The translations under genes and the position numbers were made by a program. A model generated the notes under the pieces. It ran no database searches. It was not told the DNA's origin and saw nothing but the letters and a program-made list of their open reading frames with translations. This document shows positions 855 to 5,328 of a DNA stretch of 27,487 bases, piece by piece; the stretch's first letter is position 1; each line of letters opens with the position of its first letter. This stretch comes from Salpingoeca rosetta (lineage: Eukaryota > Protista > Choanoflagellata). The stretch lies in contig JAWQFM010000002.1 of assembly GCA_033442325.1 (NCBI GenBank), positions 1,048,266-1,075,752 of the forward strand. Direction: 5' to 3'.

Positions 855-2210
855 ATGGGTCGCATGCACGCACCTGGCAAGGGTATCTCCCGCTCTTCCC
901 GCCCCTTTGTCCGCACAGCCCCCTCCGTACGTTTCTTCAAGACCAGACTCCCACTGCTCCTGTGAACATGACATGCTGTCCGATATTCTCGGTGGTGATT
1001 TGTTGTCACATCACGTTGTACTCGTCACCGTCGTGCTCGTTTGTGCTTGTGGTGGTTTGGTGGTTTGTGGTGATGGTTTGTGGTGCTCTTCCATCCACAT
1101 CATATCGCTTCCTCTGTTTCCATTCTTGCCTTCCACCAAGCCTTGCCTTCTCTTCCTCTCCTCCCTTCCCTTCTCCCACTACATTTTACTTTCCTATTCA
1201 CACTCACTCACTCATTCTTCTCACCCACGCACTCACTCTTCTCGCTCGCTCACGCACTCACTCACTCACACCAACTGACACCGCTCCTGCCGTTGCCCAC
1301 ACAACAGTGGCTGAAGAACCTGTACTCTGCTGACGATGTCAAGGAGAGCATTGTGAAGCTTGCGCGCAAGGGTCACACCCCCTCCAAGATTGGTAATGAC
1401 GCCGTGCCTTTGGGCTTGAGTTTCTCGGGTTGATCATGCAGCACCAATACCATGTGCATGCTGTTGGACATTGTCCTCAGCTGGGTGGCGGTGCTGTTGA
1501 TCTGTACATGCCTGGCTCTTGCCGACCTCCTGGCCTGTCATGGCCGTTGGTGTGCGTGCCTGCATAGCAGCACCGCATCAAACGTGAGGCTCTTTCTCTT
1601 TCTCTTTGAGGGCCTTTTGTTGTCGTTGTTGTTGTTGTTGTTTAATGTAAGTTATTGTTGTTGTTGTTGTCGTCGTCGTCGTTGTTGTTGTTGTGTCTTG
1701 TTGTGTCTGTGTGTTTGCACCTAACATGCTTGCTGTGTGCTGTGGGATGGCTGAACATGATGCTGAACACTGGCGCTCGCCACACCACATCTCCTCCCCC
1801 CATCTCTCCTCTTTCCATTTTCTTCCCCTCTCTTCCTCCTCTTCTCTCCTCCCCCGCCCCCTTGCCTAACCTTCACAACCCCCCCCCAATCTGTTTTGTT
1901 TCCAGGTGTGATTCTTCGTGATAGCCGTGGCATCTCGTCCACCAAGGCCATCACCGGCACCAAGGTGCTCCGCATCCTCAAGGCCGCCGGCCTTGCCCCC
2001 GAGATCCCGGAGGACCTGTACTGCCTCATCAAGAAGGCCGTCGCCATGCGCAAGCACCTGCAGGAGAACCGCAACGACAAGGACTGCAAGTTCCGCCTCA
2101 TTCTCGTTGAGAGCCGTATCCACCGCCTCAGCCGCTACTACCGCACCAAGGGCGTCGTTGCCCCCAACTTCAAGTACGAGAGCGCCACCGCCAGCGCCCT
2201 CGTCGCGTAA
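855..2210 (+). CDS. RPS13: 40S ribosomal protein S13 (uS15), 153 aa, 3 exons: 855-926, 1308-1392, 1906-2210
   Basis: Spliced translation [24 protein letters not shown]|[29 protein letters not shown]|VILRDS...[18 protein letters not shown]...[18 protein letters not shown]...[12 protein letters not shown] is typical eukaryotic S13. Both introns are GT-AG (927-1307, 1393-1905). Total 462 nt, in frame. Confidence 0.98.
1481..1583 (+). promoter_or_regulatory. Candidate structured poison (PTC-containing) cassette exon in RPS13 intron 2
   Basis: Acceptor-like TTGTCCTCAG ends at 1480, donor-like GTGAGG starts at 1584, and there is an in-frame TGA at 1498-1500 when spliced to exon 2. Positions 1488-1499 pair with 1565-1576. 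No transcript evidence available. Confidence 0.4.
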
Positions 2211-2249
2211 ACGCACCCATCTCCCTTGCGCGTGACAGCATGATGTGCG

Positions 2250-3223
2250 NNNNNNNNNNNNNNNNNNNNNNNNNNNNNNNNNNNNNNNNNNNNNNNNNNN
2301 NNNNNNNNNNNNNNNNNNNNNNNNNNNNNNNNNNNNNNNNNNNNNNNNNNNNNNNNNNNNNNNNNNNNNNNNNNNNNNNNNNNNNNNNNNNNNNNNNNNN
2401 NNNNNNNNNNNNNNNNNNNNNNNNNNNNNNNNNNNNNNNNNNNNNNNNNNNNNNNNNNNNNNNNNNNNNNNNNNNNNNNNNNNNNNNNNNNNNNNNNNNN
2501 NNNNNNNNNNNNNNNNNNNNNNNNNNNNNNNNNNNNNNNNNNNNNNNNNNNNNNNNNNNNNNNNNNNNNNNNNNNNNNNNNNNNNNNNNNNNNNNNNNNN
2601 NNNNNNNNNNNNNNNNNNNNNNNNNNNNNNNNNNNNNNNNNNNNNNNNNNNNNNNNNNNNNNNNNNNNNNNNNNNNNNNNNNNNNNNNNNNNNNNNNNNN
2701 NNNNNNNNNNNNNNNNNNNNNNNNNNNNNNNNNNNNNNNNNNNNNNNNNNNNNNNNNNNNNNNNNNNNNNNNNNNNNNNNNNNNNNNNNNNNNNNNNNNN
2801 NNNNNNNNNNNNNNNNNNNNNNNNNNNNNNNNNNNNNNNNNNNNNNNNNNNNNNNNNNNNNNNNNNNNNNNNNNNNNNNNNNNNNNNNNNNNNNNNNNNN
2901 NNNNNNNNNNNNNNNNNNNNNNNNNNNNNNNNNNNNNNNNNNNNNNNNNNNNNNNNNNNNNNNNNNNNNNNNNNNNNNNNNNNNNNNNNNNNNNNNNNNN
3001 NNNNNNNNNNNNNNNNNNNNNNNNNNNNNNNNNNNNNNNNNNNNNNNNNNNNNNNNNNNNNNNNNNNNNNNNNNNNNNNNNNNNNNNNNNNNNNNNNNNN
3101 NNNNNNNNNNNNNNNNNNNNNNNNNNNNNNNNNNNNNNNNNNNNNNNNNNNNNNNNNNNNNNNNNNNNNNNNNNNNNNNNNNNNNNNNNNNNNNNNNNNN
3201 NNNNNNNNNNNNNNNNNNNNNNN
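2250..3223. other. Assembly gap (974 N)
   Basis: Run of N. It hides the RPS13 3' UTR and the 3' end of the convergent RPRD1-like gene. Confidence 1.
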
Positions 3224-3264
3224 GCAAGCAGTGATTGGTCATGTCACGGGCCAATGTGACTCAC

Positions 3265-4363
3265 TGGTAATGTCCTTGATTGGCCTGTCGTCAAACACGG
3301 CTGGTGGGAGGGATCGAATCTTGGCCATGGCCGCGGCGAGCGAAGGAAACTGCTCCTCGTGGGCATCCACTTTCCTAAACAATTCGCGCTTCTGCAGCGG
3401 GGGCGTGGGGGGTGGCGCGCATCGCGAAAGTGAATCAACAAAACGTAAAGGGGTAAGGCTGTAAAGCCACACCATCCACCCGCGTGCGTGCAGCAAGTGT
3501 TGTTACATTATTGATGCGCTGAAATGACACGCAGAAGTGTGCTGGCGCGCACATGTAGTGACACGCTGAAGTGTGCTGAGGTGATATGCAAACACACATA
3601 CACCCACAAACACACCACATACACACTCACACACACACATCACATACACACACGCACACACTCACACTCACATCACATACACACATGCACGCACATTGAT
3701 TGGCTGGCCAAGGTCGACATCTTGCAAAGCATCTGTGCTGACAGCAGGGCCGCTGCTGTTGGCGCTGGCCACGGGCTGTGACGAGCGGAGGCGCTTGCGC
3801 AGTTCATTCAGGAACTCAACAGGATACGCTGCACGGTCTTGCCAGATGGAAATGACCCGAATCAGCTGCTGTTGGCCCTTTGCATCAAGCACCCTGTGCA
3901 GGAGGCAACCGCACCGCGGGCGTGTGAGCGGCTGCAATGCAATTGGAAGGTTTGTGTTTGCCATGTTTTGGCCACCAACCGCAGCTCCAGCACACAGGCA
4001 GACAGGCAGACACAGAGGCACAGTCACAGACACTCAGACACAGGCAGACTGACACACAGACACACACACACACACACAGACTGATAGACAGACAGACACA
4101 CACACGCGCACGCACGCACATGCACACACGCACATGCAGACAAACACGTGCGTGGAACTTACTTGTACACTTCGGGGAGCACGGTTGGAAGCACTGGCTG
4201 GAAGGCAGTGATGTAGGCCATGCCTTTCTTCCTGCCTTGGAGAATCACGTCATTGGCCAAGAAGATGAACTTGAGCTTCTGCTTTGTCGGCGCTGTTCAC
4301 GGGCCAGCGCAGGCAGAAGGGAGAGAGACAGGGGCGACAGGGGAAGAGAGAGAGAGAGAAATG

Positions 4364-4407
<44 letters not shown>

Positions 4408-4809
4408 GAGTCAGAGAGAGAGAGAGAGAGACAGAGAGACAGAGAGACAGAGAGAGAGACAGAGAGAGAGAGACAGAGAGAGAGACAGAGAGAGAGAGAC
4501 AGAGAGAGAGACAGAGAGAGAGACAGAGAGAGAGAGAGAGACAGTGAGAGGAATGAGGGAGGGAAGGGAGTGTCAACAACTCGAGAAACAACTCGAGCGA
4601 ACAACAACTCCACAAACAGCTTGAGCAACCATTAAATCCCCCACCGCACACACACACACACCTTGTTTGAGCTCTTGCTGCCACACTTTGACAATGTCGT
4701 CTGCGTGCTTGGAAAAGTGGAACAGCCAGAGCGAGAGTGACTGGATGCTGTCCTGGCTGGTCGACAGCGTCGACAGCTTGCGTATCAACGATGCCTTGTT
4801 TAATGACAT
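3265..4809 (-). CDS. RPRD1B: RPRD1A/B-like (Rtt103 family) RNA Pol II CTD-interacting domain protein, 3'-partial. Exons 4809-4662, 4292-4163, 3893-3695, 3391-3265; remainder in gap
   Basis: [49 protein letters not shown]|[24 protein letters not shown]...|[20 protein letters not shown] is a CID domain ([18 protein letters not shown]). Exon 4 [17 protein letters not shown] resembles the CREPT coiled-coil region. All junctions are GT-AG and frame-consistent. RPRD1A and RPRD1B cannot be distinguished (likely co-ortholog). Confidence 0.9.
4345..4545. repeat. (AG)n/(AGAC)n compound microsatellite in RPRD1-like intron 1
   Basis: About 200 nt of GAGA/GACA repeats, with a duplicated GAAATGAGTCAGAG unit. 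It reads as a long pyrimidine tract on the sense strand. Confidence 0.9.
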
Positions 4810-5328
4810 GTCGCGTGTCCGTGTATTTAAGTGTGTGTGTGTGTGCGTTTATGTGTCTGTGTGCAGCGAACAACAGGCGATGCTGTGTTAGTGGTGCAGC
4901 AGCAGCAGCAGCAGTGGATGGCTGCTGGAGTGCAGGCAAGAGCGAGAGAGGGGAGAGGGTGACAGAGGGTGTGAGCGTTGTCCTTCCTTTCCTTCTCTCT
5001 TTCTTTCTTCCTGCTGCTCGCTTGTCTGGCAGTACTGAAAAGTAGATGAAGATGTGGTCAATTATCGCCCACTGAGGCTTATTTTTGGTCGTGGGAAAGA
5101 AACAAGCGGTGAGAGACAGAAAGGAGGAAAGGCAGAGGAGGAAGTGAGGAGAGTGGCTGGCTGGTGGGCTGACCCTCTTCTGGGCTTGTATGTGTTGTTG
5201 TGTTGTGTGTGGAGGAGACAAGAGACACCAGAGAGCGGGTGCGAAAAGTGCCACGACCGCTCGCAACTCCAATCCAACCACCTCTGTCTTGGTTCAGCTT
5301 TGTTGAAAGCGTCAACTGACATGTAAGT

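Follow-up and report, generated by a model that had tools for sequence, protein, structure and literature searches.

Does an intron of a choanoflagellate ribosomal protein gene sense the protein that the gene encodes? The question is raised by RPS13 (uS15) of Salpingoeca rosetta, the gene that opens the window, that is, the whole 27,487-nt stretch of DNA analysed here, whose coordinates are used throughout. In intron 2 of this gene the first-pass annotation had proposed a cassette poison exon of 103 nt (1481-1583) under the control of a two-state RNA switch. One fold (state A) would mask both splice sites of the exon, another (state B) would free its donor, and free uS15 might move the RNA from one to the other.

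The structure of the gene is fixed by RNA reads from three stranded RNA-seq runs of 2026 (X22, X23 and X24), which carry the same species label. The raw reads were mapped to 840-2249, with the repeat at 1612-1705 left out, at a read identity cut-off of 95%, and the limit for listing a joint was 3 reads. Read counts are given below in the order X22, X23, X24.

855 to 926, forward strand: RPS13 exon 1, coding part, with the ATG at 855; joint 926>1308 in 1422, 729 and 2077 reads
927 to 1307, forward strand: RPS13 intron 1, with GT..AG ends from the joint table; read depth 4-35 vs 2000-5000 in exons
1308 to 1392, forward strand: RPS13 exon 2, bounded by joints 926>1308 and 1392>1906
1393 to 1905, forward strand: RPS13 intron 2, phase 1, inside the Gly codon of ..KIG|VILRD..; canonical joint 1392>1906 in 1655, 928 and 1896 reads
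1906 to 2210, forward strand: RPS13 exon 3, coding part with the TAA stop, from translation

The protein matches 40S S13 of S. rosetta; the translation of exon 3, which served as the query on its own, is 99-100% identical to '40S ribosomal protein S13 [Salpingoeca rosetta]'. From ~40 nt past the stop codon the window has 974 N (2250-3223), which represent a gap in the assembly or else a withheld stretch, and the end of the 3' UTR and the downstream neighbour are unreadable there.

Intron 2 had been described as low in complexity outside the element of interest. This holds for its (GTT)n run and the pyrimidine-rich 3' part that follows. The 5' part, referred to here as the block, is of mixed sequence with ~57% GC and is unremarkable, for intron 1 is laid out in the same way and a complex 5' block is therefore nothing special in this gene. 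Among the joints listed in the three runs, intron 1 has no alternative one.

The S. rosetta genome (55.4 Mb) holds RPS13 in three near-identical copies within ~190 kb of one contig. One is the window copy, L001, and the other two were located by genome search.

G000:C2:911721-914948, reverse strand: RPS13 copy L002
G000:C2:858620-861851: RPS13 copy L003

Over the gene (780-2249), with substitutions and gap columns counted, the aligned positions that depart from the window copy number 29 in L002 and 116 in L003. The differences among the copies are mostly intronic, and the encoded protein appears to be the same in all three. Across 1471 to 1609 there is no difference between L001, L002 and L003. 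In an older public reference assembly only two RPS13 copies were found, identical to L002 and L003. Searched against the S. rosetta genome, the block was carried by the three RPS13 copies only and is unique intron sequence within RPS13 intron 2.

The proposal depends in the first place on whether the splice sites around the supposed exon are used. Four features are needed to follow the RNA evidence.

1474 to 1480, forward strand: candidate 3' splice site TCCTCAG; no joint 1392>1481 listed in the 3 runs (limit 3 reads)
1584 to 1589, forward strand: alternative 5' splice site GTGAGG, junction 1583|1584; joint 1583>1906 with GT..AG ends
1393 to 1583, forward strand: exon 2 extension of 191 nt, probably retained with the alternative donor, from joint 1583>1906, the lack of a listed joint into 1481 and continuous depth
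1431 to 1433, forward strand: first in-frame stop (TGA) of the extended exon 2, from the sequence read in frame from G1392

As annotated, an acceptor-like TCCTCAG ends at 1480 and a donor AAC|GTGAGG lies at 1583|1584, and a transcript joining G1392 to 1481 would read GCT GGG TGG CGG TGC TGT TGA, with its stop at 1498-1500. The donor is used. Joint 1583>1906 was carried by 10, 17 and 18 reads, with 7, 10 and 15 distinct starts and on the sense strand throughout, which relative to the canonical junction amounts to 0.6% (X22), 1.8% (X23) and 0.9% (X24). In each of the three runs the GT at 1584 functions as a 5' splice site that is paired with the acceptor of exon 3 at 1906. It provides the sole alternative junction listed in RPS13 besides two minor classes, namely 1-nt slips at the canonical site with few reads and a non-canonical joint 2102>2144 inside exon 3 (4 reads, X23 only).

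The upstream side of the supposed exon behaved differently. Joint 1392>1481 was not listed, meaning fewer than 3 reads, in any of the three runs, vs the ~10-18 reads per run expected if the transcripts using donor 1584 were cassette inclusions. One of the two junctions proposed for the poison exon is thus present and the other stays below the listing limit. Because 1583>1906 is seen and 1392>1481 is not listed, the isoform is best described as an extension of exon 2 through an alternative 5' splice site, not as a cassette exon. Sense-strand depth in the intron is 1-3% of exon depth and flat over the block; it runs unbroken at 13-55 from 1404 to 1591, and the block showed neither antisense signal nor read pile-up in the three runs. 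From this continuous coverage, not from linkage read by read, we infer that the 191 nt are retained.

The two donors are similar on paper. Both the alternative and the constitutive one (1392|1393) match CAG|GTAAGT at 5 of 9 positions, and predicted accessibility revealed no difference between them. Within intron 2 the donor consensus is matched best by AAT|GTAAGT at 1647-1652, with 7 of 9 positions, inside the (GTT)n repeat that was left out of read mapping.

Reading on from exon 2, the TGA at 1431-1433 sits 150 nt upstream of the 1583|1906 junction. Assuming that 1393-1583 is retained, this premature stop precedes the last exon junction by more than 50 nt, and the extended message would encode only a 66-residue stub and is a predicted target of nonsense-mediated decay (NMD). 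The unproductive product is probably cleared by this route, because UPF1 is encoded in the S. rosetta genome. The idea of a premature stop reached by unproductive splicing survives in a modified form: an alternative junction is seen, and the stop that its product would use is the one at 1431-1433 in the exon 2 extension.

What does this isoform represent? The explanation we favour, and consider probable with considerable room for doubt, is a constitutive, low-level unproductive leak through a weak alternative 5' splice site, without regulation. The spliceosome would occasionally pick the downstream GTGAGG over the constitutive donor and pair it with the normal exon 3 acceptor in ~1% of steady-state transcripts. 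Exon 2, now longer by 191 nt, would be read into the TGA, and the message encoding the stub would probably be removed by NMD. If this is right, we are looking at an ordinary cryptic splice site. Several observations weigh against it. A single reproducible, stop-bearing junction in a ribosomal protein gene also fits autoregulated unproductive splicing, for which there are precedents (PMC2095825, PMC8216456). With NMD active, a steady state of 1% could mask a far higher usage, and the linkage of exon 2 to the 1583 donor is not directly seen in reads. Further, the block contains hairpins that beat most shuffles, and L001 to L003 agree throughout 1471-1609.

These hairpins lead to the question of whether the block is folded in a way that could control the donor. 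The features concerned are the following.

1432 to 1502, forward strand: hairpin B, which equals state B; dominant predicted fold, pair probability 0.98
1547 to 1581, forward strand: 3' hairpin just upstream of the alternative donor, predicted in minimum free energy folds, where it takes the second GCAGCACC copy; z -2.88, 6 of 500 shuffles
1582 to 1620, forward strand: predicted hairpin containing the alternative donor; z -2.79, 9 of 500 shuffles
1488 to 1499, forward strand: 5' arm of the putative state A helix, partner 1565-1576; 12 bp verified, ensemble probability ~0
1565 to 1576, forward strand: 3' arm of the putative state A helix; minimum free energy folding places it in the 3' hairpin instead

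All pairings that the annotation had described are present in the sequence. GCAGCACC occurs twice, at 1438-1445 and 1567-1574; state A has 12 bp with 2 G-U, the helix of CCTCA with TGAGG has 5 bp, and state B has 13 bp with one bulge. The balance between the two states is where the model departs from the proposal. In the partition function of 1393-1620 state B reached a mean pair probability of 0.98 and state A of ~0. Forcing state A costs 3.2 kcal/mol vs the minimum free energy fold, and 11.6 kcal/mol if the CCTCA/TGAGG helix is imposed as well. In the minimum free energy fold the 3' hairpin absorbs the second GCAGCACC copy, so that both copies are paired together and competition between them is not needed. 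Two comparably stable, mutually exclusive folds are accordingly absent from the predictions; both helices could form, and state B would dominate.

A similar picture emerges from comparison with dinucleotide shuffles. The fold of 1393-1620 has a z-score of -2.47 and that of 1425-1595 one of -1.82, only marginally beyond chance. Unbiased 90-nt windows gave z from +0.3 to -3.0 and the hand-cut hairpins ~-2.8 to -3.0; hairpin B, again at hand-cut ends, has z -2.97 with 5 of 500 shuffles. At such hand-cut ends the individual hairpins are more stable than ~98-99% of shuffles. The switch-like pattern fares less well. We scored bistability as the best 14-nt segment with strong duplexes to both an upstream and a downstream partner, and the value of -17.8 kcal/mol was equalled by 10-11 of 200 dinucleotide shuffles (5%). 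This carries a general caution: patterns of AG, GT and stop together with alternative helices are easily found in GC-rich introns, where they may look like a switch.

Natural variation offers another view of the helices. Hairpin B is intact in paralog L003 despite a 5-nt insertion and A1470T, both of which fall in apical loops. The RNA reads depart from the assembly at G1438T (23-54% of reads), G1496C (38-65%), C1590G (~20%) and A1470T (0-40%), the last being the L003 allele. G1496C breaks a central G-C pair of state A and of state B, and G1438T loses a state B pair; for neither is there a partner change among the listed variants, and modelled stabilities drop by 1-5 kcal/mol. Such unphased, uncompensated variants are evidence against constraint, not proof. 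The block has 4 variant sites over 217 nt vs 18 over 580 nt for the remaining intron parts, a difference in density that by a hand estimate is well short of significance. Taken as predicted structures, hairpin B and the 3' hairpin may influence donor choice; nothing shows that they toggle.

Within these bounds, the isoform could still be regulated. Excess free uS15 would bind hairpin B and/or the 3' hairpin, shift the 5' splice site from 1393 to 1584 and send RPS13 mRNA to NMD, closing a negative feedback loop. We regard this as unlikely, though it is the alternative with most in its favour. The alternative junction and the premature stop it implies were found in all three runs, the hairpins flank the alternative donor with z of about -2.8 to -3, UPF1 is present, and precedents in other organisms make regulation plausible. 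On the other side, the helix variants are uncompensated and usage is only ~1%.

In this context the known systems are instructive. Human rpS13 inhibits the splicing of its own intron 1 by binding near both splice sites, as minigene and in vitro experiments showed (Malygin et al. 2007, PMC2095825). The likeness to S. rosetta lies in the protein family (uS15), in an intron of the own pre-mRNA as the proposed sensor and in fewer productive mRNAs as the outcome; the human case concerns intron 1 and a block of splicing by the protein, whereas that of S. rosetta would concern intron 2 and an alternative 5' splice site. In yeasts, RPS13 intron structures are conserved in two clades, and the two are not homologous to each other (Hooks et al. 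and Gao et al. 2021, PMC8216456). There, as proposed for S. rosetta, structured intron RNA has been proposed to serve in autoregulation, but for the yeasts the structures are backed by many genomes that covary, and the S. rosetta block has neither covariation nor similarity to an ortholog. AtGRP7 and AtGRP8 exert feedback by an alternative 5' splice site and a premature stop (PMC2602770); in AtGRP8, splicing from a cryptic 5' splice site further downstream leaves the first part of the intron, with its stop, in the message, an isoform architecture shared with that inferred for S. rosetta. Splicing feedback is also described for RPL10a (PMC4937301) and RPS9 (PMC3315480). For AtGRP7/AtGRP8, RPL10a and RPS9, NMD sensitivity and protein dependence come from experiment, and for S. 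rosetta there is the junction alone. The cassette poison exons of SR and hnRNP genes share with the S. rosetta intron a stop-bearing segment bounded by AG and GT; they need both junctions, however, and S. rosetta shows the downstream one only.

The S. rosetta RPS13 event thus belongs to a well-known kind and is not a new kind. Were it regulated, the ribosomal protein genes known to control themselves by unproductive splicing would gain a choanoflagellate member, and RPS13 would have a third, apparently independent intron solution beside those of human and yeasts. S. rosetta is genetically tractable, which makes the idea testable. A search of the full-text literature returned no paper on splicing feedback of choanoflagellate ribosomal proteins, nor on choanoflagellate snoRNAs in RPS13.

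The annotation had named conservation of the block in orthologous choanoflagellate introns as a check, and none was seen in the one genome compared, that of Monosiga brevicollis; for the other choanoflagellates, S13 is available from transcriptomes, which lack introns. The M. brevicollis RPS13 gene (P0005, locus L004) has an intron of ~1025 nt at the same codon and phase as S. rosetta intron 2. Local alignment of this intron with the block found no similarity (the score was equalled by 66 of 300 shuffles), and a covariance model of the block gave a best E of 0.9 against it with filters off; both comparisons have low power at the distance between these species. An Rfam search of the M. brevicollis RPS13 gene returned nothing. 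The M. brevicollis intron 2 (L004 2839-3863) is itself ~1 kb of complex, non-repetitive sequence and by far the longest intron of that gene. For regulation by uS15, the lack of conservation with M. brevicollis counts as a point against.

A binding site for uS15 could also be recognizable as a mimic of its rRNA site. The best local match of the block to 18S rRNA (block 1547-1571) was equalled by 12 of 200 shuffles and falls late in 18S, at a position that does not resemble the central-domain uS15 site. Mimicry of 18S is thus not supported, which again speaks against regulation by uS15. S15/uS15 sites are marked by a three-way junction and, one turn away, a G-U/G-C motif; in both helices here, by inspection, G-U pairs stand beside G-C pairs, but the two G are on opposite strands. 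The S. rosetta 18S rRNA gene used here was located through a primer-like pattern and lies at L007 880-2988; with 2109 nt vs 1831 positions of the Rfam model it has sizeable expansions, and a conserved 18S word occurs in at least 13 copies over many contigs.

An improbable explanation is that the transcripts using donor 1584 start inside intron 2, for example near 1426, as a separate non-coding RNA. In X23, 10 molecules begin at 1426 at a depth of 49, and depth past ~1498 is 1.5-2 times the depth before. The cluster at 1426 occurs in one run only and may consist of PCR copies, coverage continues from exon 2 into the intron, and reads of the allele with the 5-nt insertion that drop out at the 95% identity cut-off can account for the dip at 1451-1497.

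It is highly improbable that the block is cut out of the intron as a stable RNA, be it a snoRNA or some other small RNA, and that its splice signals are incidental; the annotation itself had named an excised snoRNA as the alternative to its switch. snoRNAs are often hosted by introns of ribosomal protein genes, and vertebrate RPS13 hosts U14. The block is structured, and its flat coverage is compatible with a processed RNA since ordinary mRNA libraries rarely capture snoRNAs. The sequence features of such an RNA are nevertheless missing. Rfam searches of the whole window at the gathering threshold and of 700-2250 at E up to 10 found nothing relevant; the CUGA D box is absent throughout 1393-1620, and inspection found no ANANNA or ACA box at the required places after either hairpin. 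Antisense complementarity of the block to 18S does not exceed chance (143 of 200 shuffles are as good), and only three gene copies carry the block. We set aside the snoRNA reading as unlikely on the missing boxes and the lack of rRNA complementarity beyond chance, and the read data give it no pile-up.

Least credible is the cassette exon with its two-state switch, which has all of its motifs and pairings in place and a donor in use, but which is largely refuted for these libraries by the missing joint into 1481, by a state A that the ensemble hardly contains and that costs most when the splice-site helix is added, by a bistable pattern found in shuffles and by the G1496C allele that breaks a central pair of both states. 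The first-pass annotation is in this sense partly supported: a minor unproductive 5' splice site stands, and the cassette exon and the balanced switch are not supported.

A last observation concerns the window copy itself. Its specific alleles (1796, 1801, 1955, 2228-2233) are absent from the RNA reads; C1955, for example, appears in ~0.1% of ~2000 reads. Other alleles, 893T, 1438T, 1496C, 1590G and 1815T, occur in the RNA reads and in no assembled copy. Two explanations offer themselves: a difference between the sequenced strain and the assembly, or a window copy that is silent or in part misassembled.
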